From Pocillopora damicornis (Eukaryota): a stretch of DNA of 64,000 nt. Below, one piece after another: positions 12,968 through 59,634 of the stretch (its first letter is position 1; each line of letters opens with the position of its first letter). The notes under the pieces are model-generated. The model did no database searches and had not been told where the DNA came from. It saw only the letters and a list, made by a program, of their open reading frames with translations. The position numbers and the translations under genes were made by a program. The stretch is from positions 434,001 to 498,000 of the forward strand of contig NW_020846942.1 of the NCBI RefSeq assembly GCF_003704095.1, written 5' to 3'.

Positions 12968-15900
12968 TCACATTGATCCCTGTAATTCCGCCTTCACACT
13001 GTTTATCTCTTTCTCCAACATCTCTTTCTCGGTTTCCAGCGCAGCTGTTCTTTTGAGATTCACCTGTAATCTGTTCTCCAGAGTTTGAAGAAGAGGTCCA
13101 CACATAACCTCCATGAGCTGACACAAAGCCTTGGTAAAAACTGCCAAAATAATAAAAAAAAGCATTTAATCAAAACAGAAATAAGGTAAGAAGAGATACT
13201 GAGTAATGCAGAATTGGGGGAAGCAAAGAGTGGGGAGGGGGGAGTGGGGGAGAGGGGGTGGGGTGGGAGTGAAGTGGGGGAGTAAGGATAGTAGAGGGTG
13301 AAGAGGAATGAGTGGGGAGATGGGTGAAATGCGAGTAGGATGGAATGACCTGGAATAACACTGATGACTTTTTAAATGACAGAATAAACTTATTCCCTCC
13401 GCTTATTAATTTACTAATTTTGATCAAATACAATTGAAGACAGAGTACTGCTGAAGTTTTCAAGATTAAATGAAAAGAAGTTGAAAATTTGCTATTTCAA
13501 GAATTCTGTTCTCTGCTAAGAACACACACTCAGGAACTTAAGGCAAGTACATTGCATGGTCACAAAAGAGAAGAAGTACAATCTGTTAATCACTTGCAGC
13601 ACAAAAGTTCATGGAAAGATATTCACAGGGCTGACTCAACAAGGGCTATGGGAGTAAGCAATTTGTCCATCCAAGAATCCCACCTCTACCAAATTTTCTA
13701 AAACACTGTTCACAAAATGACTAAAATCACATTATAGTTTCAATAAATGCCTCTACCAACCTGTACTATTATGAACTGCTGTTAATAAATCCTTAGAGCT
13801 GTTAATAAAAATGGTAAATTTAAGTTTCATACAAGTGGACAGAATACCCAGCTGTGATCACTTGAATAAAATGACTCAGAGCAGAAAAAATGTCTGAGCA
13901 TTTTGAAAGAACCTTGGCTGCATTGTTCAAAACACAATTTTAATTATGAAATTATGAAATAAATCCAGGATTAGTTTTAAAAAAAACTCTTCAGAGTTTC
14001 TTTTTTCTTTTGAGAAGCCAGGCATGAAAATAACACCAGCCAACAATGGGTAAAATTTGTACCAGAACAAGACAAGTATTTTACTGCTTTTTATAATTAA
14101 ACCAGCCAGCACTTTTAAGCTTTAAATCAAGTAGTTGGTTAAAATGCTGGCCACCACTACCTCTGGAGCACACTATTGCTTCGCCATACCAACTAAATCT
14201 GGATTAAGGCAGAGCAAGTTTTGATAAACTTGACTCATGACTTGTTCACCCTTTCCACACAAAAATACTTCAAAGCATATCTTATCCCAATAATCTACTC
14301 TCACTTGGCATTTTGCAACCAAGACAGAACTTCTCCTTGACCTTTCAATTCAATATCAAGCAGACAAGAAATGATATTAAAGAAATGTATCAATTAGGAG
14401 ACTAGTTTATCCAGTTCCAAATTCTCCACACTAATACCTTAAGAATTGTATAGCAAACAGTAGGGAGAATTATTAATAAGATCTTGGGAGTGAAAAGAGT
14501 TAAATGAACATGGACTAATAACCCCTTGAACCTTTAAACTCCCATGAGTGACCAAGACAGAATTTCTCCTTACAATATCAATACAATATCAACCAGATAA
14601 AATATCAATTTGGGGATAATTAGTTGATCCAATACTAAATTCTCTGAACTAACATCATAGGAATTGTATGGTTGACAATAAAGAGAATTACAAATTTGAT
14701 CTGGGAGTGAAAGGGTTAACATCGATACAAACCCTTTGTCTAGTGTCATTAGTTTCTGTTAGAGTCTCTTTGTGGATAAACATCAGCACTAGGGAATATA
14801 CTAAGCTGTACACAAAACTAAAAGGTAAAACGATAATATTTTTTTAGCAAGCATTTCTGTTGATAGAAAACTTACTTCAAAGTTTTACTGTATGCCTCTT
14901 CTTCTTCCTTTAATGAATAAAAAAAAAAAACAAGGCATCAACAATGTCTTTCTGCATTTATTAAGTGGTCAAGTATTGGAGTAAAGTACTGTCATTGGTT
15001 CAAGGGTAACCTGGTGCAAATCAACAACCATTATTTTCTTTTAAAATCATTTTTTTCGTATTTGAACTGATGGTTTATATTTTAAGCAATAGGTGTTAGA
15101 TTTAATCAACATTTAAATAAAGACACACACTAAAATTTATCAATTAACTACTCTGGGTAAGTTTCCTACTGGACTTCACCAGTGATCAATTGCATAGTAA
15201 ACCTAGTTGACTGTAACAGGTAATTTAGTGTTAACAACTGAGTTGAAAACATAAATTGGCCACCATAACAAGGTGAAAGGCTGACATTTCGAGCATTAGC
15301 CCTTTGTGAAAAAGGGCTATCAAAGGGCAACGAAAGGGCAATTGAGTGACCAAGACAGAATTTTTCCTTACAATACAATTTTAACCAGATAAGTGATGAG
15401 AATAAAGAAAAATATCAATTTGGGGATAATTACTTGATCCAATACTTAATTCTCCAAACTAGCATTACAAGAATTGTATGGTTGACAGTAAGGAGAATGA
15501 AACATTTGCTCTGGGAGTTAAAGGGTTAAACTCTTTACAGTGGCCAATTTATGTTTTCAACTCAGTTGTTAACACTAAATTGTCTGTTATACTCTCCCAC
15601 CAATGCAGCACCACAGTTTCTTTAGAAACTTATCCTCTTTTTATCTAGTTGACTGTAGTTTTGGTAGGCAACTTACAAATGATTCTAGAGTCCAAATAAA
15701 TCCTTTGATAGGGAAATGAAAAGTTTATCTATGCATGTATATCTATGCAAAGGTGGTCTTCACAGACTTTGTTTTTTTTGTTGTTGATGAGTTTAGTTTT
15801 TGAAATGAATCACTTTAAGGAATCATTCTATCACCTCACCTTTGATAGTATTTGTGGCAGTTCTGACAAGCTGTTTAAAGTAGCCTTTGACAAAACCTCT

Positions 15901-41814: not shown

Positions 41815-44800
41815 CTATCTTTCAAATCGCTGAAGCCTTCTTCTACAAACTTCATCCAGCGAACTTTCCTGGGGCGTGACGCTTTCCGGGGGGTACGGCG
41901 CATGTCTCCCTGTGTATCCGTTAACAACGTGTTCTTGCGGGGGAGCAGAAGGTTCTGGATCCGTAGAGTAGGATTCCGCTATCCCCGAAGGGTACGGTGG
42001 AGACTGCGCGAACGCCCCGCCTGTATAGGGAGTAGGATCCGGCAGGCGGGGATAAAGACCTCCTCCCTCTCGAGGGTAGGGCGGAACTTCTTGGGAGGGG
42101 TAGGCTGAGGGCCCCTGAGTGGAGTAGGGTGGCGGCCGCGAAGAAACGCCACCAGATGAAGTTGCCGACCGAGAATTATAACGGCCCCCATTTTGAGGGG
42201 GGTATGGTGGGGATCCGGAAGATGGCCCTCTTCTCTGAGGCTGTTGGTTATCAGACCACCGAGAGGGCTCCCCTCCTGGGTTATCTAGGCTCTCTCTTAT
42301 TGCCGTCTGTATCCTTGGGTCATAATCATCCAGGTTTGGCTGTCGATTCATATGTGTTTCTCGGAGGCTTGCCCTTATAGCTTCTCTGAGTTCTTCATCA
42401 GCGGAATCATCGTCATCTGGAGGCTGTCTGTTTCGTCTTCGTCCTGTAGAAAGATTGGACTTAAGATGAGGGAGGCTCACTTAAGTTTTGATTAGAGATA
42501 CTGATGTTTTACAACAAGAACAAGGTTCACCATGGTATTCAGGCACGAGTAGTTGCATTTGTACTTTCAGGCAAGAAACTGTTACCCTTTACACCCTAAC
42601 ATCAATATGCATATTTTCCATAGTGTTCTCCATAAATTTCCCAAGATGCTGAAAGGGAGAACTTGTGAGGAAAAGAGCTTCTTTGGTTGATAATCAGTTC
42701 CTTTATTCTAGTGATTTAATTGTGTGATTCAGAGATAATATTGCTTAGAGAAATTAGATAATAGTCACTCTTAAAGATCAGAGGGTTAATTACTCCTACG
42801 ATTTAAAAGGTTAATACCAACACTCTTTATGTGGAGCCTGTTTCAAATAGTTAGTTTATTTCTTGTTAACCTGTTGTCCCCACATGGTAGGTGTATGATT
42901 GTCTCATTCTTCTTGTCACTCCTGATCCTAGCAAAAAAGGGAGTTAGCACTTAAAATTCAGGCAAAGAAAAATAATCTACAAATACAAATATAAGTTAAA
43001 CTCAAAACGACACTTCTTAACCCTTTACACTCTTACTTCAGTATGCATATTCTCCATACTGCTTTCGATAAATTTTCTAGGGCATTGGCAAGGAGAATTG
43101 TTTAACAATCAAGAACTTCTTTAGCAGCTGATCATTTCCTTTCTTCTTCTGATCATAATCTCTGTGCCATTTTCGATAAATTTTCTAGGGCATTGGCAAG
43201 GAGAATTATTTAACAGTCAAGAGCTTCTTTGGCAGCTGATCGTTTCCTTTCTTCTCCTGAACATAATCTCTGTACCATTTCAATAAATTTTCTAGGGCAT
43301 CGGCAAGGAGAATTGTTAAACAATCAAGAGCTTCTTTAGCAGCTGATCATTTCCTTTCTTCTCCTGACCATAATGTTTGATTCATGGGTAATATGATGGG
43401 AAGAAATTAAATGCAAGTCACTTATTAGGGTCAAAGGGTTAGTTGAACCCCTATTTCAGTCTCATCTCAACTGAATGGGGGGCACTTGGAACTAATTTTA
43501 CCATATCACCCCAATAGTTGTTTGCTATAACATAACATAGAACACCATATATCACCCCAATAATTGTTTGCTATAACATTACATAGAACACACTTTTCCA
43601 AGTAACAGTGATGAATTAAGGTATACATTATGAGAATAACCATTCACAAAATGACCTAAATAGTTAGGGTAAATTTCCAGGAGCATAGTTGTATTGTGTT
43701 AAATTATTTTTAAAACTTTTGCATGGACACTTAAAAATTAACAGTAAGGAATTGTTACTATTTTCTTTTCACTCATTACAATATTACACGGTTTTGAAGA
43801 AAAAAAGGTCTGCATATTAACTCAGTGTTTCAGGCAGTGGCTTTCAAACTTTGAAAAAGAATTGATAGCAGAAACCAGAAACAAGAAACCTGAAAAAGGA
43901 TTATAAATTATCAGATCATTTTTGGATTCTGCATTCAAAAGAAAAAAAATTATGAGTGATGTGTTTGGTGTAATGTGTTGATTGAATAGGGATGGAGGTT
44001 TTCCAACAAAGGAACAGGTCCTGGTTTTTCAAAGGTCGAATAATGCTATCCACAGGATAAATCTCAACATGATGGATAATCTCTATTAAAAATCTATCTG
44101 CTGGATAGTAATTTATCTGTTAGATAGAATTATTAAACCTTTATACAACAATTAGTTAAGTTTAAACCTGACTGGTACAGAAAATAAATAACCAAGCAAT
44201 GATGATGCATTTGTTGAAAGATGTTCTTTTCATCTTGTCACAGACATGTGAAAAAGAGAAATTCTTGAGTTCTAAGGGCAAAATAAATGTTAGATCACCA
44301 GATTTTGGACTTTGATGCTCAACCTTTTAGCCATATGGACTCTCCTATGAGGACAGTTGTTACTGGGTTCAAAGATAACACACCCACTGTATACTGCAAT
44401 GCTAGGAGCCTTGTGTGAGTAAATAGTAATCCTAATAGTATAAATACAACTACTACTTCTAATAATAATAATACAGAGGATTTAGGTGGAGCTGTTTCTA
44501 CCAAGTATCCAACAGTACTTTACAATATTGAAAGTTAAATAATAAATTAATTAAGAATAGAACATCAATGAGAGTTAGAACGAAATAGAAAAATGGAATA
44601 GAAAAACTAGAATAATAAAGACGTAAAAATTTAAATTCAGTGTTGAGATGAAGAAAGATGTTTTTCATCCATAATAACACAAACATCATTTCAGACAAAA
44701 TTTAGCTGGCTTTTCCTTAAATAAGGGAAATAACGCTAGTATTGAGTAACTTACCAGCACCACTGATTGTATCCATGATATACTTTAAAGGACCTTTAAC

Positions 44801-45433
44801 GTACATCATTCCCACAAGAATACCAGCTAAATGACCAGTAAATGAGGCATTAGGAACAAGAAGCTGAATGACAATCAACTCCGCCCAACAGGCCCACCTC
44901 ATTGGTACTGGGAACATACCCATCACCATGGAAACACCAGAAGGAAGGTTGTACGTTGTAAGAACTTTAAGGGCAAAGATGACACCTGAAAAACCCGCAG
45001 CACAGGTGTACATGTAAGAAAAGTCCTCAGTTACGTTCGCCAGAACCATGTCTAAAGCAACAAGAACGGTGTTAGTTAAGGCAGTGAATACGGACAAGAT
45101 GTACAGAAATTTCGGACTTCCCATCCTTGGTTCAAGCGACATGCCCTTCCAAACGAACGAGGCCATGTTGTAGTACAAATGAAAGTCGTTTAAGTGATAA
45201 AAGGCAGCGAAAATGATTCGCTTCCAGTCGCCATTGTACCAGACATGATGGGCACTAACACAAGCTTTTCCGAGAGATGGAAGGTTGTTCAAAAGCTGGA
45301 GATAAACTGCGACGTTTATACCGATGAAAGTCAGTGTTACAGGAGGAATCCTGTTAAAACCAATGTTGTAGAGCTGGCTGGCCAAAAATAACAATCCGAT
45401 CCCCGGGGATCTTCTTCGCCCCGGCCGGAACAT
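41815..45433 (-). CDS. RHBDD1: Rhomboid-related protein 4 (ERAD rhomboid protease), 2 coding exons, about 435 aa
   Basis: Exons 45433-44755 and 42443-41815 (phase 1). IPPVTL, HLYYNMAS, catalytic GFSGV and GHLAG, UIM-like DEELREAIRASL, C-terminal VCP-binding-like RRRLQRF. Confidence 0.93.
43017..43442. mobile_element. piggyBac-type MITE expanded by an internal tandem triplication of about 108 bp
   Basis: ttaaccctttacactc ... gtcaaagggttag. The unit tttcgataaattttctagggcattggcaaggagaatt... starts at 43063, 43171 and about 43278. Confidence 0.75.
43501..43590. repeat. About 45-bp tandem duplication
   Basis: ccatatcaccccaata.ttgtttgctataacat.acatagaaca occurs twice. Confidence 0.85.
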
Positions 45434-46742: not shown

Positions 46743-49700
46743 TCATGAAGGAACTATGATGTATGGCTGAAATGGAACAAAGGCGCCCTTTTCGTGACAG
46801 ACAATGATCCACCTGGGTCGCACAAAGGCCAGGGAAGGGTTTTCATCGAGGGCCTGGGAACAAGAGGAAAAACAACTGGTTACGTTTATAACACATCAAA
46901 TAGACACTGTGGGAACAGTAAAAGACAATTATGAGTTTGGCTGACATGTGTCGATTTCCAGATTTTTAAAATTCTTTTAATTTCATACATAAACGAAGGT
47001 CTCTTTCCCCCGACCTCGCATTGAGAAATTGCGTAAAAAAGAATTCAATTTCCCTTCCTATTTTCAAGTCATTTCATCGGCAAAAATAAGTTCCATGTAA
47101 TTCTGCATAATTACCTAGACTCAGAACGACAGATCGATGTTAGTCTTATCGTGGTAAGTATTGCTTGTAAAACAGTTGCTTAAGAACAAAAGGGAACAGC
47201 CGATGTGCACACTTTACTTACCTCATCAAAGTTTTTGTCCCAATCCTCATTGGTTATGACAAAGTCGACATTATCATTCATATACTCTTCTATAGTTCTG
47301 CAGAGAATGTAACAAGAGACATCAAAGATAATTCCGAGGATTGAGAAGAATTTCCGAAAAGAGGACGGTGATTCAGCTCTTTTGACGCCCACAAAAAGTG
47401 TTTCACAATCAAACAAATCCCTCACCCATTATAAGCAGTGATGTATCTTATCAACAGTCTCCTGGTCTTGCCATCAATTTCACCATACAGCATGAAATGC
47501 TTATGAGAGAAAAAATCAGGTAACAGGGGAAGGTCCTCTGAGCTTGAAATGACTTCGTCAGCAGACTCCGCCTTTCCTGCAAAAAAAAAAAAAAAAAAAA
47601 AACGGTGGAGGTCTGGGGACATGTTTTCTAAAAATTTCTTGATGTGATTTATGACAGAAATTGGAGGAGCGTAGAGAGAGATCGGCAACTCCTGGTACAT
47701 GTTAATAATTAGCCCGTCAAAAATTCTTTCTCGAAAATTGAACAACGTTCTGAGGAGAAAAACAATTTTAGTTCTGATTTTGAATTTGCTGAGATCTTGC
47801 ACTGATAGGACCCATGAGTTTAATATTTTGATTAAAAAAAAAAGGGATTCGAGGTGTTTCTTTGAAGGCCACCTTTTCCTCCCGTACCTTGTTCGTCATC
47901 AGTCGTACCGCCATATATATCTTCGCCTTCACCAGTTTCTTTTTGGATTCTACAAAGATAAAATCAATGAAATGAATACCCATAGTCAGAATGCCTGCCA
48001 ATGACACCTAAAACCTCCGAAGGGATGTTCGGTTAGGGCTGTTTTCAACTACGTCTCGAATTAATTGACTTGGTTTTGCATTGCTAAGCCCTGTGATTGG
48101 TCAAGAAAACTCGCTCCGCCCCCTCAACCAATCAGATGCCGTATAAAGACACAATCACGACTTGATCACGCGCGTTTTCCCGCGCTTCAATCAAGTTCTT
48201 GGTTTTCACCAAAAGCGCATTAGCTTCTTGTATTCTTGAATTATTTTTCTTTTTTCTGAATTGTCGATGAGGATAATTTTAGTCGCCTTTTTACGACACT
48301 TAATTGAAATACGCATAACCATTTCTTTCCCGCCCGGTTCTTGTTGCCATTACTGTAGTGGCTCATTTGCTTTCAGGTTCTGGTATGCTCACCTTCTTAA
48401 TTCATCCTCTGTATCATGATCACTGCATGAAGTCTCTTTTGGGCTCAAAGGAGATGGAGCAGTTTCATTTTTACCACTCTTTTCCGGTTGAGGTGATTCG
48501 TCGTCAGTTGAACCACCATAAATGTCATCTTCCTCCTCTATTTTCCCGGCTGCATCTTAAAAAAAAATACAGAAAACAGATTTGATTGAAAAAGCCTCGG
48601 CAAAGTTACAACAAAATCTAAACCGGCATTTACAATTACCCCATTTTTAACAGTTTTCAAATACTTTTTTTTGTTGCATGTCTGTGTTTTCGAAATGTTT
48701 CAGTGCTGTGCGTTACTATCATTCTTCAAAGTAGAGGTTTGTTTCTGAGAAGTGAGTCTGCGTCTACGTACCTTTCTTTTCATTTGGACCCGAGACTTTT
48801 GCCACTAGAGTTTTGTCGCTCTCTTCGGGAGTGTCGTCTTTCTGCACGTGAACAAATTAGAGTCGTTTTCGTTCAGACCAAATAGAGCAAATTTCGATTT
48901 CATGCTTTACATAACCAATGGGGTGACTGAGGATCCAAATGTTTTGTACCACACTTGAGTTGTATACAATAGAAATATTTAGCATCGCGTTTACATGAAA
49001 CGGCAAACGTCATGTTTCACGTAAAATAGCGTAAACCTTTCTACTTTAGCTTTGCATTAGTTCATGTCATCTCGGCATTTGAAGGATTTTTAACGTAAAA
49101 CTTCATCTGCCCTTATACGACTTATAGGAAATAGTTTTTGGTGCCCTTCTTCCGCCAATAAAATTCTACTCTGTAAAAGAAAAAGTGAAGAAAATCTTAC
49201 GTACACGGCAACCGTGAAACAGCTTATTTTCACGCAGAAACGCCAAAGCGCAACCCGCAAACGGGAAAAATGGCGGGACGTGGTTACGTGGTCACTCTTG
49301 CCCTTCACGTTTCACGTAAACGCGGTGCTAAATCTCCCTAATGATAAAAGTTCACGAAAACACAACCAGCAAATCACGAGCATCACTTATCGCACCTTTG
49401 AATTCGCATCACTTGCTGGGGCCTTCTTGTAATTCCGCTCATTTCTGTCACTTCCTGTTTTAGGAGGCGGCCGTGCTGGTTTGGCATCCTCCCCTTCACT
49501 GCTTTCATCAGATGAACTACTGTCGCCTGGTAAGTGGTAACTTACAGAAAAAAAGAAAAGTCATCAAGAACGTTAACTAATTGGGAGGAAAAGTCGATAA
49601 TCTGTAAATCGGACGGAACTAGCCGGAATCGAGCGGAAGCGTCCAAATACGGACGAAAGTGGCGAAAACAGGACGGAAACCGACAAAACACTTTTTAACA

Positions 49701-52700
49701 CTCACGAAACACAAACGCAACGTTGCATAAGGGACATCTCCCAATTTCCTGACACAAATTTTCCCGAGAGTCCTTAGTGAAATATGTGGTACAGGAGCGG
49801 AGTTACTTACTGTCGAGTGGGCAAGCATCTGCTTTTTTTAAAACAGTCAGTTATCCACTTTTTTGTGACGATCTTTCCTTTCCCTGAAGTTTAGTGAAAA
49901 AAAAAATAGTGCAAACAAAATAAATCACATTATGACCTTTAACAAGTAAAGAATAAATCTTTGTAGGTTATGTGCAGTTCAAGTCATTGCAGAAAATGAA
50001 GATTGAAAAAATTCAGGCGTCAACAAGGATGAAGCCCTTAGCACCCTGCTTATGTTTACTTTAACCTTTACACCATAATATCACCAGGACCTAGTTTAGT
50101 TGGTGATCATTTCCTTTATTCTCATGACCTGAATGTTTGATTCAGTGGTGATATTGTAAGGAGAAATTAGAGGCTGTTGACGATCATGAGTCAGAAGGTT
50201 AACTTCGCATCCAAAACTCAACTGTATTTCTTAAGTCACTGACACATACTTGAGATTTAGCGTAAACAATAACTAACCTTTCACTTGGTTGAACTTTGGA
50301 GTGTTGGCGAAGGCACAACTACAAAAGGAGAAACATGGGCCATAAAAATTCATTCAGTCCCTTTATGCTACCCCGTGTATCTTACCATTTTCAGATTGTC
50401 CTTGATTCGGAAAAGGAAAATATCGTTGAAAAGGATCCTACATTCTTATTCATGAGTGGACGGAGATACTGTAAGAGCGTGCGCCAAAAAAGGTTCAAAT
50501 TGAGAATACCTCTGGCTTATCAACCAAGTTTGAGGTCCACGCTGTAAGTCGAAAATTGAAGGAGGGCAAAAAGTGTAAGAAGTGCGAGGACGAGGCTAAT
50601 GCCTAAATATATATTACTACATCTCTATTGTAGGTCTGACGGCTTTGAAAAAAAAAATTTCTAGCTCAGTACACCCAACAGCTTCACATGACTGACGCAC
50701 GTCGATAGCCAAACGCATCATTTCGAAACCGTCGTACACCCATTAGCACGTTTTAACCCAGAATGTAAAGAAGAAGAAAGATTTTCTTCTACTAAAGGTA
50801 CTATTAATAGCAAGACTGCTTTGGCAACAAAACAGTTTTAAATGTTAGAGAACCGTGACCGTGCAGAAAGCAGGGTACGGCTCGCTAAGTCGACTTATCA
50901 CAGCACGCCTCTTACATCAGATGAGTGCATCCTTTTCCCCAGTCCTGTCTGTACTGCGCTCCCATCTGCAATGCCTTTTCGCGAAGATTACCTCGCTCAG
51001 GGTTCACAAATCCACTCATAACAAACACTACGCCTTTCTTAAAGAAACCAAAAAACAAATGTATGGAGCAATAAGAGACCCATTAGAGCCTATAATAAAC
51101 TGTTTATGTTTAAGAATGAGGTCAAAGCACAAACAAGCTGAGGCGTGGAGTGTGGATTTTACAATTAAGCCTAACGTTACCATAATTTCACCAAAAGGAA
51201 CAGAACTTTCGTCACGTATAGGAGAGTCTGAAAAAAAGCAGCAAAAAGTTATCTATTGCCTGGTAATTTTGTCACCGGTTTGCCTTTTCTATAAATGTTG
51301 TGGAGGTGTCAAAATGAATACAGTCGTAAAATAGGTTGTGGTTTTTCATCCTGGTAAATAACAGATCAAAAGAGAAATAAAAGCGTTTGTCTCACGATGT
51401 GGTCGCTTCAGATATGGATAGCGACCTTTCGACTGCATACTGCTGGTCTTCTTCAGACGGTCATGGTGAAACAATTTGAAAAATTCATCTCTGGTTATGT
51501 CCTTTTACCTCTTTTTTTCTTGGATGGTGGTGCTGGTTTATTATCATTTTTCTCTTTTGGTGAATCTTCATGCTTCCGTTTGGTGCTCTGAAACACAAAA
51601 ATATAAAAACTTCAATTAACAAGCGTTCACCTAGCACAATACTTCATAACGCGACTCTATCAGTATGCAAAAATCCCGAGCAATTAGTAAAAATCGAGGG
51701 CGGTTTCAAGACAGAATAGTGAAAAATTAACGATTAAATCCAAATTCCTCGAGTAGCAAGTGAACCACGGCTGGTTAATTCAACGACCGAACAGAACAAA
51801 ATAATGTAAAACCTATGCGGAGGCAAAAAGATTATTCAACGTAAGGAGACAGCCGTCCTGACCGCGTGAAAACGTGATTGATCAAGTAACTGAATGGAAA
51901 ACTGGTGCAACTCTTCTAACCGATTACCGAGCACAGAGAAACAAACCAATTTCCAAACACTTTTAATCACTCTCAAGTAAGAACCTACCTCGCTTGTTTT
52001 CCTATGAGAATACCTCTCGCCCGGTTTTGGGGAAGATCTACCACCAATTTTGTCTGCTCTGCCTCTGGCCACTGGTTGTCTGTCCGAGGCTACTGAGTGT
52101 GTCTCTCTATCCCCTGACTGTCCATCCTTTGTTGATGGGTGCTTGTGATTCTGAGCAGTGCTGGCAGCAATTGTTCTCTTGTCGACTGAAGAAATGACTG
52201 TTGATGCTGCTGCTCGAACTTCAGCTGCAGTGGACATGGATGGCGGAGAGCTTTTCTTTTGAAATTTTTTGAAAAAGAGATTTCCAGAAGAAATTTTTTT
52301 CTCTTCAGTGTCACTATCACCTTTTAATGTAAAACGTCCAAGTCTCTTTGAAGCCTGAAATGATTTTAAGGAAATCATGATCATATTGGTCAGAGCTTTT
52401 CAAAAAAAAGTTAGCCATGTTGTGCTAAAGAATGAGCCAGGAACATGATATAAATGAACCACATTTGTCAAAAGAAGTAAGCCTATCACCAGACAGAACA
52501 TTTGAACATCAAAACATTTACTAAATCTAAGAACTACTGGCTTGACTTCAAAGACATCCTACACTAAAAAAAAAATGGTTATTTAAGAGAGCTTATATGG
52601 TTGGCAGCCCATAATAAGCATTCTTATCAGAGTGAAGCAGTGAATCATGCTTCAACACAGGAGTAGAACTATTTACTTTTTTTTATCTCAGGGATTTACG

Positions 52701-55402
52701 TCTTGCAAAATTCTTATGAAGTTCAATTTAATTTTTATTTATGGAAATCAAGATTGCATACATGTAAGGTTATAACCTACTTTAAAAGAAGAAAATAATC
52801 CTTCACGTACTATTTCAATCTGTATTGAAAAGTCTCGCCAAGGAGCCATGCAGAGAGATGTGAAGCAAAACGTTCTTTGTCACAGTGGGGATTTTTGATA
52901 CTCACTGTCACTGGAGTGTGAGGCATTGCTTCCTTTGTGGCTTGAGAGTCATCGTCCATGTCATCAGGAGGAGAATGGAGGTTAATGAAGGACAGACCAT
53001 AACGTTCATTCTAAAGAATGGTGAAAAAAAAGCTATTACAACATATTGCATTTTGGAATTTTTATTGATTTTGGAATTTTTTACAGATGATTTCATTAGT
53101 TTTGCATTTTTTTCTATTTTTGTTACATTTTTTTTTCCTCTGCTGTTAAGTTAAGGTTAGGTTCTATTTCATTGCCAAAACTAACAATGTGTATTACCTT
53201 GTTAAATGGTTGGGTGCAAACCAACTTGACCCTGTCCCACTTCTGAGTTGCTACTGGTTTGGAGAGCTTATCAACACCTGATGAAGGAAGAAGAGTATTT
53301 TAAGTCTAATAATTAATTTCAAATAAAACAAATAGAATAAAAATGAAAAGCGGTAAAATCAGACAAGCTCAAAGCTACATGGGCATGGCAATCATATCCT
53401 AATTTAGTAACTGAGAAAGTAGGGTGACCATAAATCTGTAAATCACAAGAGAGATTTTGTAAGTAACTTCTCCTAACCATATCAAAACAATGTCCTGCAG
53501 ACAGGTGCAGTGGTCTCCCTTATTTTAAGCATGACATGTAAAATAAATGTTTAACTGGGTAGAGCAATGACCAGCTCAACTTTTAAGATTTCCAAGTGGT
53601 TTTAGGTGGTAATGAGAGGTTCTACAAGCTGTTAATTTTACTGGTTGAAAAGGAGAAAACTGCAAGTGATAAGAATAATTAAAATTATCAACTTTAAGAC
53701 AGTCTGTTGATTTAGAACCAAATCATCAATTGTGTCATAAGATGTAATGTAGTATGTTTGACTGTCTTTTTACCAATTTAATGACCCAGGCTGGATGTTG
53801 GGAGAACACGACAAACCTTTGTGAATCACCCGCCCCTGACTGGTGATTTGCAAGCTTTGGTTGTGTTCTCCCGCTATATCAGGTAGGTTATTGCACTAGT
53901 AAATCAACAGAAAAAGTGGTCTATTACTATATGTTTACCGGTGCAATAAATGATACTGAGGTTTTTGACTAAAAAAAAAAAGGGTGAAGTTCCCCTCTGA
54001 GAGAGGGTTACTAGAGAACAGTAGAACAATGAAATATTCTTTGCCAAACCCAAGCTCTGATGCAATCAAACATGATGAATAGATAGCTCATGCTAACCAA
54101 ACATCCTCACTCTATTGGTGCTGGTAAAGGATTTACTTTCAGCTGGGCTCATAAAGGACGATGCAACAAGAAGAACCTAAAAATAGTACATAAAATTCAT
54201 CACATTCAAAACTTGCACCTCTGGATACAGTCATGTAATTCAATAAACTTCATATCTGGTTTAAATCTTGTATGATCTTTTAATAAAATTTTCAAAACAC
54301 TTGGAAATCAATTTTCCATTATAGGTTTTTTGTTGGTTTGTCTCCAATTATCCATGTCCTTTTCCCTAGCAAAGCTTCCTATCATTGGCTGCCTTTTTAT
54401 CCAAACAATTGATAAACTGCAGTCATTTGAAGCATTTAAACCAAATCTAAAACTGTGCACTTGTTTTTGACTGCACAAGATGGAGTACATAGTAATATCC
54501 AATAGAAGATAACAAACAAACAAACAAACAGAATGTAACAGAATAAAACTAGAGCAAAAAAATTATTTCAAAAACTTGGACTTCACCTGAAATTGTTCAT
54601 CAGAGCTCCAAGAAGATCTTCCAACTAACACTTCCACAAGTGCTGAACCATTGTTACCTAGACAGTAATGATTTATTTTGAAGCAACTGAAAGTGATAAA
54701 CCCTCCTCATAACTTCAATACATTGTCTACCAGACAGATGATTAAAATGAACAAACTTGATGACTGGTGGACATATTCTAAACAAACTTAGGTAGAAATG
54801 TTTGGCAGCTAACATGGAAATGAATTAAAGGACCTCTTTTAAGGATATAAACAACACCATCCCGGAAAAAGATTACAAACAAGTTCAAGCCCAGAGTTTA
54901 ACGAGTGCAACAATTATATCATTCCCTACTTCTAGAAGCGACAGGTACCAACCTATGTCGATGGAATGTATTTGCGTTGCTTTCTCAAGCTATAGTGGAA
55001 AAAAAATTCAAGTCTTAAAATCATACAAGAGCATTCAAAGTGTTACTAGTCCATGCGAGCCTGCTAAGTCCTAACACAGAGAGTACAAATAACACCGACA
55101 CTCAATGGGTTTGAAGTTATACAAATATCCTGTTCACAAAATTTACCTCCAAAATAACAGAAGCTTGTTTCTCTCCTGGAGATGCACACCTCCATTTCCT
55201 ATACGTTTCTGATTTAAGTAGGTTTTGTGCTGGTTGTGTCTAGGAATAACAAAGTTGTGAAATCAGGATTTAATTTATGAAGGGGAAGTTGTTGATTCAA
55301 CTTCTAGATGTAGCTGCTTTTCACAAGTAAAGTGAAACATTTCGAACTTACCACATCTTCGCTGCTGAAGGATAACACATGCCTGGGACGAATAAGAGGC
55401 AT
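46743..55402 (-). CDS. XRCC1: DNA repair protein XRCC1, 20 exons, about 673 aa
   Basis: Exons 55402-55352, 55239-55147, 54989-54953, 54657-54587, 54176-54098, 53277-53198, 53010-52906, 52354-51989, 51587-51509, 51227-51181, 51037-50916, 50318-50278, 49883-49811, 49540-49396, 48841-48772, 48555-48393, 47949-47888, 47576-47426, 47297-47222, 46853-46743. N-terminal domain (MPLIRPRHVLSFSSED, IDIGNNGSALVEVLV, FMSPAES, KWDRVKLVCTQPFN), BRCT1 (VVFVMSGFVNPERGNLREKA..CTHLICAFANTPKF), BRCT2 (LPDFF..LIRYITAYNG..FVRPRWI). Confidence 0.96.
48971..49339. mobile_element. MITE with terminal inverted repeats in an XRCC1 intron
   Basis: atttagcatcgcgtttacatgaaacg ... cgtttcacgtaaacgcggtgctaaat. Confidence 0.65.
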
Positions 55403-55709
55403 GCCTCTATCGTTTATTTGACTGACAAATCGTCAAATTTTATAAACGCAGCAAATTTAGACGTGGTTGCTCGTTAAATGCAAAACTCACTCAGGCGTTC
55501 CTTGTTCTGCACGGTTGAGCTCTGGACTCCAGTTTTTTAACGTCATTTTCCCGCCAACTTCCTGTAGGCACACGCGCCGCTGGCTGCTCTACACGCTGCC
55601 ACTACATGTGACTTTTCCGCATGCTCAACCTTCGCCAGAATCTTGCAGAAAAACCCTCTGGTGAACCACATCCCTTCTTGGAAAAATCCTTTTCTTCTAT
55701 TCTACAAAA
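55403..55709. promoter_or_regulatory. Putative bidirectional promoter / 5' UTRs between XRCC1 and the RRM-TatD gene
   Basis: Only 307 bp separate the divergent ATGs. Locally richer in GC and CpG. Contains tttcccgcc (E2F-like) near 55547-55555. Confidence 0.6.
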
Positions 55710-58700
55710 ATGTCAACAAATAGACGATTTTACATAGGTAAGTGGAGGCAACTGTCCGTAAACTGGAACTAAATACATTGGCATAACAGAGCCTGTTCAG
55801 CTTGGAACGAGGTTGTTTGTTGTGACAAGCGTTCACGTGGTTTGTTCTCAGCTCCCACCCGTCTTGCTTTTAAACGAATGGCTTTATTATGTTTGAGAAG
55901 TCGCATTCATGATTTTCGCGCAATTATGTGGCTGCGAAATCTCCTTCGAATTATTTAGCTTTGTTGCCGTGTTTGTCACAGTTTCGAAATTAATTGAGAC
56001 AGATAAGCCTGGAAATCACTCCATGAATTTAAAACAGCTGCAAGCACTCTAAGATGCCACAGAAAGCGTTTTTAACGGCATGAAAAGTCCATAGGTTTAT
56101 TAAAACAACACAGAGAGGATTGCAATCTTGGCCCCTAGCATGTTAATTTATCTTTAGCTCGCAGTGAAACATGAAACTGCATACAACACTCCATATATGT
56201 GCAAACCCCTCTTTACGTGCGCTCATGCACAACACTTCAATACGTGATGTTCACGTTACTTGAAGATTAAGTTGACTTCTTACCTCACAAAAAGGCAATG
56301 GCTTCAGCATTCCACATCACAACATTAATGTTTTCACCCTGAAGTCAGATTTAAAATGGATTTAAAAAACTCACATCCAGTGTTAACACATGCCTACAGG
56401 CTAATTTCTCATTCCATTCCATTTCAAGAATTTGAATTTGAAAATAGCATGCCTTTGAATCAAATCAGCAGACAGGTACACAAAATATTTTCAAAATACC
56501 CTCGGTATTCTATTTGAGCTTTGCATTGCAAGTGTCTGTTGTCTTTTCCTTGTCATTATCCATACTTTGTTTAATTTGTAGGCAATCTCTCTTTGAAAGT
56601 GACTAAAGATGACCTCCGCCGTCACTTTGGTTTAGACAGCACGCCTTACTTGAGATCAAATTCATGGATTGAATTACCTGTGGAACGTCCAGGAATGTCT
56701 CATGGGTTTGGATTCATTAATGTACCAGAGCAACTGGCAAGTAAGTTTTGAGTGTAATAGTGAGAGGTTAAGTCTGTTCACAAGCCAAGTGGTAAAATGG
56801 TACTTAATACAGTACACAGAACTTGAACTGTACCATCACCTTGCTTGCAAACTTGATAAAACTTTGAGGCTTTATTGTATTCCAGGTCACTTACTTCAGC
56901 TGAATGGAACAAAACTTTATGACAGATTCATCAAAGTTGAACCAGCTAATACTCAAATGGGAGGTCGCAGGAGCAAAGTCTCTATTCCTTCAATGTTTCC
57001 ATCTTCATATGTAATGCCAATTCCACAACTGGCTAACTATCCCTATGGAATGAACCAGTATAGTCATAACATGAAGGGTCGACGGAACAGGCAATTTCTT
57101 CAAGGGCCAAATGAAATAGTGACTGTTCCAGAAGATAGAATTTTACAGCTTATTGATGTTGGTGTCAATCTGCCAAACAAGGCGTAAGTCAAACTAACTA
57201 ACTTTGTTATATGGCCAGGCAGTCCTGAGGTAAATCGCAAGTGTTCAGTTTTCAGACCAAAGATGAACTTTTTCGAATCATTTGACATTCTCTGCCAGAA
57301 AAAAATTAAAACACAGAAAATCACTTAGTAACAAAATAATAACTTCTTTGTTGAAGTAGTTTTCATTCTATTTTTTAAGGATTTAAAGTTTTATGTAAGC
57401 TATGTTTTAAAATCAACTTGACTGTTATTTTGCATTTTCACTGCAGATTTTCAAGAGATATACGAAATGTCATAGAACAAGCAGATTTAGTGGGAATAAA
57501 AAAAATGATTTTAACAGGGAACACTTTACAGATGAGTCAGTCAGCTGTTCTTCATGCTAAGGCACATCCTCATGTCTTATATGCATCTGTCGGTGTACAC
57601 CCTCATTTCACAACAAAAGAATGGAATGAAAAAACAGCCAGGGAGATTGAAGAATTGGCAAAAGACCCGGTAGTCGTTGCTATTGGTGAGGTTGGTTTGG
57701 ACTTCCACAGAAATTATTCAGATGAAAAGGCACAAGTTGAAGCATTTACAAAACAGGTAAGCCCTTGGGTATTTAGTTCATTGAAATTGTGGACAAAACC
57801 AGCAATAACGATTTCTTTTTGATAACACAACAGGTTGAAATTGCTTGTGAGGTTCAGAAACCTCTCTTAGCGCATGAGCGGGCATCGCACCAGAAGTTTA
57901 TTGAGGTGTTGAGTCACTTCAGTGGCAGGTTGCCTTCAATTGTGATTCACTGTTTCACTGGTAGTGTCTCTGAAATGAGTGCCTATGTTGCCATGGGATT
58001 TTACATTGGAATTTGTGGCTTTATTTGCAAAGGTTAGTTGAACTGAGTTTCTTTTGAGGGCACTGACTAGTTTATCCAAAAGTCTATACCTGAGCTGAAT
58101 AGCCCACAAGGGAGCTTATCTTAGTCTCCATGAAATGAAGCAACCAGCAGTTTTGTTACTCCCTTTGGGCGAAGGCTTTTTCAAGCATCTATTTACATTA
58201 TTGCATAGAGAGAGGTGCTGTGAGAGTGATGTGTCTTACCCGAGAACTCAGCAAAATGACCTGGCTCAGTTAAGAACCCAAACCCTTAGACCTGGAGTTA
58301 ACCATTATGCCGCCATGCCTCCTTCCAGTAAATCCTTACTTGTGAGTTAACCCTTGTGAATTTGATTATCTGATACTTCAAATTCCCTCACCTTCTTGAA
58401 AAAAAAGAGAAAAAAGAAAAACTTATATATTTTTGTTTCTTATAGGGTCATTTTCTTCAATACTTTAACTTCTTTTAATTTTTGCAATTTTATGACATCA
58501 TTAGTTGTCTTATCCTGAGAATATAACATTATATACTTGCAATAATCCCCTGGTGATGATTTTCTTTTGCTTTTGGCTAAAAACAGGGGAACAAGTAAAC
58601 AAAGATCTTTAGTTTACCCACCCAAAAAGGAATAACTAAAAACTTTTTCCATGGTTGCAGATAGTCCAGGCAAAGCATTAAGAGATGCTCTTAAAGAAGG

Positions 58701-58989
58701 TGTTTTACCACTTGACAGGATTCTTCTTGAAAGTGATGCTCCTTATATGATCCCCAATGCTCCTGAGAAGGAGTTGGACGATGTATGCAAGTCACTTCTT
58801 AAAAGGTGTCAGCCAGGACGGAATGAGCCTTGTACTCTTCCTATTGTGGCCCACACTGTTGCAAAATGTCTAGGGGTTGATGCTGAAGAGGTAGCACGAG
58901 CATCAACTGAAAATGCAAGGCGGGTTTTTGACCTGAAGTTACCTGTTCCTACCACACAACCTGCACCCACAGCCATTGGGTCTGAATAA
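55710..58989 (+). CDS. RRM-TatD fusion: N-terminal RNA-recognition motif plus a TatD-family (E. coli TatD/TATDN1-like) nuclease, 6 exons, about 440 aa
   Basis: Exons 55710-55737, 56582-56740, 56886-57183, 57447-57756, 57834-58032, 58661-58989, all GT-AG and phase-consistent. RRM: RFYIGNL (RNP2), HGFGFINV (RNP1), LNGTKLYDRFIKVEPA. TatD: IDVGVNL, GVHPH, GEVGLD, LAHER, IHCFTG, LESDAPY, RNEP. Confidence 0.88.
58085..58325 (-). repeat. Probable SINE remnant in the TatD intron
   Basis: Resembles the reverse strand of a tRNA-derived SINE body (gagagaggtgctgtgagagt...tgtcttacccgagaac...aaccattatgccgcc). Recognised from memory only. Confidence 0.4.
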
Positions 58990-59430
58990 ATGCTGCATTG
59001 TACAAAGACGATAAAAACTACTGCACTTAGTCAAAGTATATAACATGTATCTATCTCTTTCAGAATGAACATTATGATACATGTAGTCATGCTTAGGCAG
59101 TTGGTTATTATCTATGCAGGAAGGATTGGTAGTAAAGGCTCTTCCCTTCTTAATTAAAGCAGAATTAAGTCATTATTCATGCTAAACCTACTGCCAGACC
59201 TTCAGAGAAGTTTTCACTGGTGGTACCTGCTTTACAATTCCCCCAACTTAATATTTTTTTTGTCTTAAAAATGCCATTTGTTGTCTAAAAAATCCAATCA
59301 GACATGGAAGTGGAAAGGAAGTTTTTGAAAGATTAGTAATCTGTTACTTTACCAGGTCATTTTTGACAGAGTAAAGTGAAAATGCAAGACGAAGTCAGGA
59401 GTTATGCTGACTGATTATTGTACAATAGAA

Positions 59431-59634
59431 TTAACCCTTTAACTCCTTGATTAAATTTGTAATTCTCCTTACTGTCAACCATACAATTTTTATGTTCAGA
59501 GAATTTAGTATTGGATCAACCAATTATCCATAAAGTTATATTTTTCTTTATTCTCATCACTTATCTGATTGATATTGTAATGATAATTTAAGGAGAAATT
59601 CTGTCTTGGTCACTCATGGGAGTCACAGGGTTAA
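59431..59634. mobile_element. piggyBac-type MITE, complete copy with TTAA TSD
   Basis: ttaa|ccctttaactcc ... ggagtcacaggg|ttaa. Reverse orientation relative to the 14530 and 18029 copies. Confidence 0.8.

Follow-up and report, generated by a model that had tools for sequence, protein, structure and literature searches.

TatD nucleases are ubiquitous, and their substrates in vivo are debated, with apoptotic DNA, oxidised DNA, apurinic/apyrimidinic (AP) sites and R-loops all under discussion. The E. coli enzyme is a Mg2+-dependent 3'-5' exonuclease on single-stranded DNA (ssDNA) and single-stranded RNA, and C. elegans CRN-2 acts in apoptotic DNA fragmentation (PMC4176340). Humans are described as having TATDN1, TATDN2 and TATDN3 only; TATDN1 is a 3'-exonuclease and AP-endonuclease, and TATDN3 likewise adds AP-endonuclease activity (PMC10085689). 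TATDN2 requires its N-terminal extension for R-loop binding, and degrades the RNA strand (PMC10711561). Here we describe a gene of the coral Pocillopora damicornis that encodes an RNA recognition motif (RRM) and a TatD nuclease domain in one protein of 440 amino acids (aa). It lies in a stretch of 64,000 nucleotides, below called the window (positions 434,001 to 498,000, forward strand, of contig NW_020846942.1, assembly GCF_003704095.1). The gene is real, transcribed, ancient and uncharacterised, and the RRM-TatD combination is an old animal nuclease variant rather than a one-off.

RRM and TatD exons on one mRNA

The gene occupies positions 55710-58989 of the plus strand and consists of six exons, read from the window and checked by script. 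The coding length of 1323 nt corresponds to 440 codons and a TAA stop, and the five introns, of 844, 145, 263, 77 and 628 nt, all have GT..AG borders. Exon by exon, the translations are exact substrings of a database protein (P0153, 440 aa; NCBI 'hypothetical protein pdam_00000960 [Pocillopora damicornis]') and tile its residues 1-440. Each split codon contributes one residue (G10, S63, A162 and D332), which matches the codon read across the intron. Exons, frames and borders are as a first-pass annotation had read them from the DNA. The whole-protein analyses below were run on this database protein, and exons were otherwise searched singly.

Transcript evidence comes from a spliced Logan contig (L006; ERR9592165_237610, 1943 nt), whose single uninterrupted open reading frame (ORF) encodes a protein of 440 aa (P0155). 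The contig aligns with the window in six blocks of 98.1-99.5% identity that span 55584-59482, and the block ends coincide with the predicted junctions 55737/56582, 56740/56886, 57183/57447, 57756/57834 and 58032/58661, the first three of which had been proposed for this check. As the contig lacks all five introns, it must come from spliced RNA, and the RRM and TatD exons therefore reside on one mRNA. The 5' end of the contig lies 126 nt upstream of the start codon (ATG); the transcript includes the RRM exons and does not begin downstream of them. Among the public-contig records that encode a listed protein, none was found for P0153 itself.

The old Nematostella and Actinostola gene models, which hold the TatD part only, could be taken to mean that the fusion is an annotation or read-through artefact, with a TatD gene and a small, separate RRM gene run together. 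This explanation, to which we assign a negligible probability, is already refuted by the exact exon tiling, by the complete ORF on one spliced contig, and by the third exon. Exon 3 lies within one open frame (ORF 56669-57187) and reads from the last RRM strand (beta4, IKVEPA) through the linker into the first TatD strand (IDVGVNL), as had been claimed from the sequence. Across many taxa, the same architecture recurs both in annotations made independently and in contigs of transcript length, whose library type is uncertain. The RRM-TatD locus is a bona fide transcribed coral gene.

The last 52 nt of the 3' untranslated region (UTR) in the contig (59431-59482) also match 14668-14719 and 15478-15529 (minus strand) of the window at 86-88% identity, and are probably a short dispersed repeat.

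The two domains

When exons are searched singly, Pfam RRM_1 yields only a weak match (E 0.044, exon 2), because the domain is split over three exons. On the whole protein, the RRM_1 alignment runs from end to end (profile positions 2-70, residues 8-79). Orthologues score above the gathering threshold (P0008 at 34.6, Clytia at 29.9, Glandiceps at 26.5 and Ptychodera at 23.5 bits), and about two dozen more proteins carry a precomputed PF00076 match. A profile of 26 family members matches dozens of solved RRMs over profile positions 6-100, with E values of ~1e-9 to 1e-11 for single RRMs (hnRNP A1, U2AF65, RBM7, nucleolin) and of 1e-21 for PABP, which has several RRMs. The coral protein as sole query matches the RRMs of RBM7 and RBM39 at E ~1e-3.

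Structure prediction agrees with the profiles. AlphaFold2, run on the coral protein with the 26-member family alignment, places beta1 at residues 4-10, alpha1 at 18-24, a short extra helix at 31-36, beta2 at 38-40, beta3 at 53-58, alpha2 at 59-66 and beta4 at 79-82, and the predicted local distance difference test score (pLDDT) of the RRM is 81-92. Foldseek returns only TatD/amidohydrolase barrels for the full 440-aa model, and the RRM fold was tested separately on the model of a family member, a 192-aa single-exon homologue (P0289). All top 50 PDB matches of this N-terminal model are RRMs, with target-normalised template modelling (TM) scores mostly of 0.65-0.83 for chains with a single RRM and lower scores for longer chains, and root-mean-square deviations mostly of ~2-3 Å. 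RNP2 (FYIGNL) corresponds to residues 7-12, and RNP1 is HGFGFI (GFGFI at 51-55). The RNP aromatic residues are kept in nearly all RRM-bearing members (F/I-Y-x-G-N-L and G-F/Y-A/G-F/Y).

On account of the orthologue scores, the family profile and the predicted structure, we identify the N-terminal ~85 residues (about 4-82) as a predicted canonical RRM with aromatic RNP1 and RNP2 residues. The hidden Markov model searches (orthologues and family profile) and the fold thus support the earlier call, made from the RNP2, RNP1 and beta4 motifs. The alpha1-beta2 loop contains a family-specific motif, FGL(D/x)(S/T)TPYLRS (window 56633-56665, residues ~27-37), that is conserved across corals and hydrozoans and corresponds to the predicted extra short helix.

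The RRM is followed by a basic, Arg/Gly-rich (Arg/Gly/Pro/Tyr) linker of ~60 residues, of which residues 86-137 are predicted to be disordered (AlphaFold pLDDT below 50). Many orthologues have an explicit RGG tract in this region. Intact RNP aromatics in an RRM, together with a basic, RGG-like linker, are a standard combination for binding single strands.

TatD_DNase (PF01026) scores 211.9 bits on the coral protein, against a cut-off of 27 (profile 1-252, residues 152-421), and the barrel comprises about residues 150-423. Among solved structures, the protein scores 178 bits with E. coli TatD (1XWY), 165 with P. putida TatD, 89 with human TATDN1 and 54 with TATDN3. The top Foldseek matches of the full model are 3RCM, 4P5U and 1XWY (P. 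putida and E. coli TatD; TM 0.87-0.92). Most 10-residue blocks of the modelled barrel (145-425) have a mean pLDDT above 90, and none is under 74.

Group I TatD enzymes have (G/A)xN in place of HxH at the first strand (PMC10085689). The coral motif, IDVGVNL, is of the GxN and not the HxH type, and its G155 and N157 align with DIGVNL of E. coli TatD. The HMMER alignment equates E. coli E91, H127, H152, E201 and D203 with coral E243, H279, H304, E355 and D357, and H62 and H64 with H213 and H215; all of these residues are present. E91A, E201A and D203A abolish the exonuclease activity of E. coli TatD, and H62A strongly lowers it (PMC4176340). The C-terminal part is, as judged from alignment and model, a Group I (GxN) TatD barrel with every metal and catalytic residue of the E. 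coli enzyme. The motifs that had been described as intact (GEVGLD, AHER, HCFTG and ESDAPY) are so in this comparison as well.

Paralogues and distribution

The coral assembly (234 Mb, 4393 contigs) contains three TatD-type loci besides the RRM-TatD gene. A TATDN1-type gene on contig C4004 (L008, G000:C4004:297000-305000) has an exon with an E value of 1.4e-7 against human TATDN1 and of only 0.21 against E. coli TatD. For a TATDN3-type gene on contig C3510 (L007, G000:C3510:138000-147999), the sole PDB match is TATDN3 (E 3.6e-11). Both genes are canonical and made of small exons, and an additional copy of one TATDN3-like exon (LLLETDSPAL) is found elsewhere (L009, G000:C3966). The third locus is an intronless ORF of 349 codons with two CCHC zinc knuckles before a TatD domain of the HxH type (Group II). 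It is a second TatD in this genome with an appended nucleic-acid-binding module, and may be the cnidarian counterpart of TATDN2.

In view of these three loci, the RRM-TatD gene is, by sequence comparison, a fourth TatD paralogue. Its automatic UniRef name, 'Deoxyribonuclease TATDN1', is misleading. Orthology to TATDN1 is rejected by the bit scores (178 for E. coli TatD against 89 for human TATDN1) and by the separate TATDN1-type gene.

RRM-TatD proteins of 413-481 aa occur in Scleractinia (Pocillopora, Porites lobata), Actiniaria (Actinia tenebrosa isoform X1), Hydrozoa (Clytia, with the UniProt name 'RRM domain-containing protein'), hemichordates (Glandiceps, Ptychodera, Saccoglossus), echinoderms (Patiria, Asterias) and the annelid tubeworm Lamellibrachia, in which the RRM is degenerate. 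Many unnamed contigs of transcript length (~1.4-2.9 kb, of uncertain library type) also encode the architecture and cluster with the hydrozoans. Databases name the proteins '3'-5' ssDNA/RNA exonuclease TatD-like' or 'RRM domain-containing protein'. Isoform X2 of Actinia (P0158, 359 aa) has no detected RRM, and isoform X2 of Hydractinia (P0188, 337 aa) begins within beta4; some species may make an alternative product without the RRM.

A word-index search seeded with the hemichordate orthologue shows the same TatD type to be common among invertebrates, with examples in nematodes, insects, crustaceans, a myriapod, a tardigrade, a horseshoe crab and amphioxus. These ecdysozoan and amphioxus proteins are mostly of ~285-340 aa, and none of those scanned or aligned has an RRM, as annotated. 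Those from Caenorhabditis bear the names CRN-2 or 'Cell-death-Related Nuclease'. A careful maximum likelihood tree (48 rows, rooted on the HxH paralogue, full-length TATDN1 sequences left out) supports an animal clade (94/88) that divides into Cnidaria (100/99) and Bilateria (99/99), the latter with Caenorhabditis CRN-2 inside. The animal clade roughly tracks the species tree and has bacterial TatDs as neighbours, and a quick tree agrees. Because full-length eukaryotic TATDN1 is absent from the trees, we make no claim of bacterial origin or horizontal transfer.

The phylogeny places the coral TatD domain in the same animal lineage as C. elegans CRN-2, a point that the first-pass annotation had missed. 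As the RRM occurs on both sides of the cnidarian-bilaterian split, the RRM-bearing form is probably the ancestral animal form, with a probable later loss of the fusion in Ecdysozoa and, going by annotation, in amphioxus. In vertebrates the gene may have been lost altogether, since no vertebrate protein is among the best 120 matches of either word-index search, which is suggestive only.

According to the annotation, no described RRM-TatD architecture was known. This holds for the literature on TatD proteins with an RNA recognition motif, where we found no paper that characterises the architecture. It does not hold for the databases, where the architecture is annotated and widespread (Cnidaria, Ambulacraria, Annelida). 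RRM-TatD proteins are thus present in databases and uncharacterised in the literature found. Other TatD fusions exist among the nearest non-animal relatives: one protein (P0021, 539 aa) combines an RNase_T exonuclease with TatD, and another (P0081, 373 aa) has a weakly Peptidase_S24-like N-terminus before the TatD domain.

Possible function, neighbourhood and relation to known enzymes

Taking sequence, model and analogy together, we lean towards regarding the 440-aa protein as a two-domain enzyme of the CRN-2 lineage, an RRM-tethered TatD 3'-5' exonuclease on single-stranded RNA or DNA. The barrel would act as a Mg2+-dependent 3'->5' exonuclease on single-stranded nucleic acid, and possibly also as an AP endonuclease. 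The RRM and the basic linker would hold a single-stranded RNA or DNA segment, and the flexible tether would raise the local substrate concentration or affinity. By analogy with the N-terminal extension of TATDN2, the tethered RRM is proposed to steer the nuclease to RNA 3' ends, R-loops and 3' overhangs. The most likely cellular role would be nucleic-acid end processing in genome maintenance, which we rank above apoptotic DNA clearance and RNA turnover.

Several observations weigh against this assignment. The RRM_1 score of the coral protein is 19.1 bits, just under the gathering score of 20.7. The RRM diverges faster than the nuclease: identity with Porites is 62.5% over exon 2, and 85-93% over the three TatD exons. 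In Actinia and Hydractinia, the annotated X2 isoforms are shorter and lack the RRM wholly or for the most part. Gene order, described below, provides no general link to repair. Finally, many RRM-bearing relatives have altered active sites. The equivalent of E201 (coral E355) is Q or H in a medusozoan-like clade, and that of D203 (coral D357) is N in much of this clade, in Porites and in two echinoderms (starfish); the sequences suggest that the substituted lineages may have a conserved job other than classical hydrolysis. The equivalent of H152 is sometimes Y or F in RRM-bearing relatives. Examples of substituted rows are P0176, P0162-P0191, P0156, P0110 and P0348 (alignment A1).

The family could accordingly be drifting towards a non-catalytic nucleic-acid binder, a pseudo-nuclease, of which the coral protein would be an intact-looking copy with little activity. 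Among the sequences compared, such substitutions are confined to RRM-bearing lineages and found in no RRM-less animal or bacterial sequence, and E201A and D203A inactivate the E. coli enzyme (PMC4176340). However, the coral protein retains all these residues, and the whole barrel remains highly conserved. The substitutions are no proof of inactivity, because the equivalent Asp is partly dispensable in human enzymes: D222A and E220A barely change the activity of TATDN1 (PMC10085689), and D707A only reduces that of TATDN2 (PMC10711561). We therefore rate a pseudo-nuclease as very improbable. It is slightly easier to imagine, but still improbable, that the RRM is a protein-protein module (a U2AF homology motif-like or pseudo-RRM) that recruits the nuclease to a partner without binding nucleic acid. 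The sub-threshold Pfam score would fit, as would the conserved FGL..TPYLRS loop with its extra helix between alpha1 and beta2, a potential docking surface, and the best single-sequence PDB matches include RRMs of RBM7 and RBM39 whose structures were determined within protein complexes. Against this stand the RNP2/RNP1 aromatics, kept in nearly all RRM-bearing sequences, and the adjoining basic linker, RGG-rich in many orthologues. A conserved RNP aromatic pattern is a mark of nucleic-acid-binding RRMs.

An apoptotic DNA-degradation nuclease like CRN-2, with the RRM as an accessory for ssDNA ends or regulation and no RNA targeting, is unlikely, although less so than the two preceding explanations. 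It draws on the well-supported clade that the TatD domain shares with CRN-2 and 'Cell-death-Related Nuclease' proteins, on the part of CRN-2 in apoptotic DNA fragmentation (PMC4176340), and on the ability of RRMs to bind ssDNA; the family-profile matches include a solved 'Ss-DNA binding protein 12RNP2'. Yet CRN-2 and all ecdysozoan members do without an RRM, so that CRN-2 function needs none, and nothing links the coral gene to cell death. An apoptotic role overlaps the tethered exonuclease that we favour rather than excluding it.

An XRCC1 orthologue lies head-to-head with the RRM-TatD gene (Table 1). A distance of 307 bp separates the two ATGs, and 182 bp lie between the XRCC1 ATG and the start of the TatD transcript contig. 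Actinia tenebrosa (L017) has this divergent gene pair as well. XRCC1 is absent within 10 kb of the RRM-TatD gene in Porites lobata (L020) and Clytia (L018), and the head-to-head neighbour in Patiria (L021) and Glandiceps (L022) is IFT57. The upstream ORFs of a eukaryotic contig (L016) have no Pfam match. A conserved XRCC1 neighbourhood as a functional clue thus fails in Porites, Clytia, Patiria and Glandiceps. As the pairing is kept only between Pocillopora and Actinia, with IFT57 instead in ambulacrarians, it is a hexacorallian feature that hints, at most weakly, at co-regulation with strand-break repair. The same genome has a second XRCC1_N-domain gene (G000:C809:422028-423941). Elsewhere in the window, a single ORF of 238 codons with several hydrophobic segments and GFSG and HLAG motifs looks like a rhomboid-type intramembrane protease.

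Table 1. Coordinates of the RRM-TatD gene, its neighbours and the zinc-knuckle paralogue (window positions unless another contig is named)
Feature	Position	Strand	Content	Evidence
Rhomboid-like ORF (putative)	44717..45433	-	238 aa	
XRCC1 orthologue	46746..55402	-	14 exon pieces; ATG at 55402	XRCC1_N matches at 53192-55242; collinear with Actinia XRCC1
Divergent intergenic stretch	55403..55583		Short; presumed shared promoter region	XRCC1 ATG to transcript contig start
5' UTR	55584..55709	+	At least 126 nt	Block 1 of spliced contig L006 begins at 55584
Exon 1 (coding)	55710..55737	+	Met and first half of RNP2 (..RFYI-G); ends in phase 1	
Exon 2	56582..56740	+	Rest of RNP2 (GNL), alpha1, FGLDSTPYLRS loop, beta2, RNP1 (HGFGFI), start of alpha2	
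Exon 3	56886..57183	+	RRM end (to ~56944), linker (~56954-57109), first TatD strand IDVGVNL (from ~57146)	
Exon 4	57447..57756	+	TatD profile positions 13-114, GVHPH (H213, H215), GEVGLD (E243)	Pfam E 4.8e-21
Exon 5	57834..58032	+	TatD positions 116-179, AHER (H279), HCFTG (H304)	Pfam E 1.1e-13
Exon 6	58661..58989	+	TatD positions 186-253, LESDAPY (E355, D357), RNEP, C-terminal tail, TAA	Pfam E 6e-14
3' UTR	58990..59482	+	To the end of the transcript contig	Block 6 of L006 ends at 59482
Zinc-knuckle TatD	L001:1249-2298 = G000:C3979, about 227165-228214	+	Intronless ORF	

A conserved and apparently ancestral RRM on a CRN-2-type TatD amounts to a natural experiment on the substrates of these enzymes, and its presence points to single-stranded RNA or RNA-containing structures. 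It is conceivable, although we hold this only tentatively, that the ancestral animal CRN-2/TatD was an RRM-guided nuclease on RNA or RNA-DNA hybrids, that ecdysozoans and amphioxus lost the RRM, and that the replacement of acidic residues in the medusozoan-like proteins (of the Asp only in Porites and starfish) turned these into binders with altered or no hydrolysis. If the ancestral enzyme was RRM-guided in this way, it would define an RNA-linked branch of TatD biology that had gone unrecognised. A fourth TatD paralogue, hidden by the automatic 'TATDN1' naming, is carried by corals and by several further invertebrate phyla, and the scattered active-site substitutions in RRM-bearing members offer a route to the residues that TatD chemistry needs.

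Of the described enzymes with solved structures, E. coli TatD (ExoXI; 1XWY, 4P5U, 4PE8) matches the coral protein best in sequence and is one of the closest in fold (TM 0.91-0.92). The two share the Group I GxN motif and the residues E91/H127/H152/E201/D203 and H62/H64 (E. coli numbering). Unlike the coral protein, E. coli TatD is a bacterial single-domain protein of 260 aa, without RRM or linker. C. elegans CRN-2 (NP_504476) groups with the coral protein in the animal TatD clade and retains every catalytic residue, but consists of the TatD domain only (286 aa), and its role is in apoptotic DNA degradation. Human TATDN1 (2XIO, 8EFG) is a Group I enzyme with the (G/A)xN motif, like the coral protein, but matches it at only 89 bits, compared to 178 for E. 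coli TatD, and the coral has a TATDN1-type gene of its own. Human TATDN2 resembles the coral protein in being a TatD nuclease with an N-terminal extension that is needed for an RNA-containing substrate, the R-loop. It is non-orthologous and of Group II (HxH), and its extension is long and disordered instead of an RRM, but it provides the closest functional analogy for an appended module that may target a TatD nuclease.

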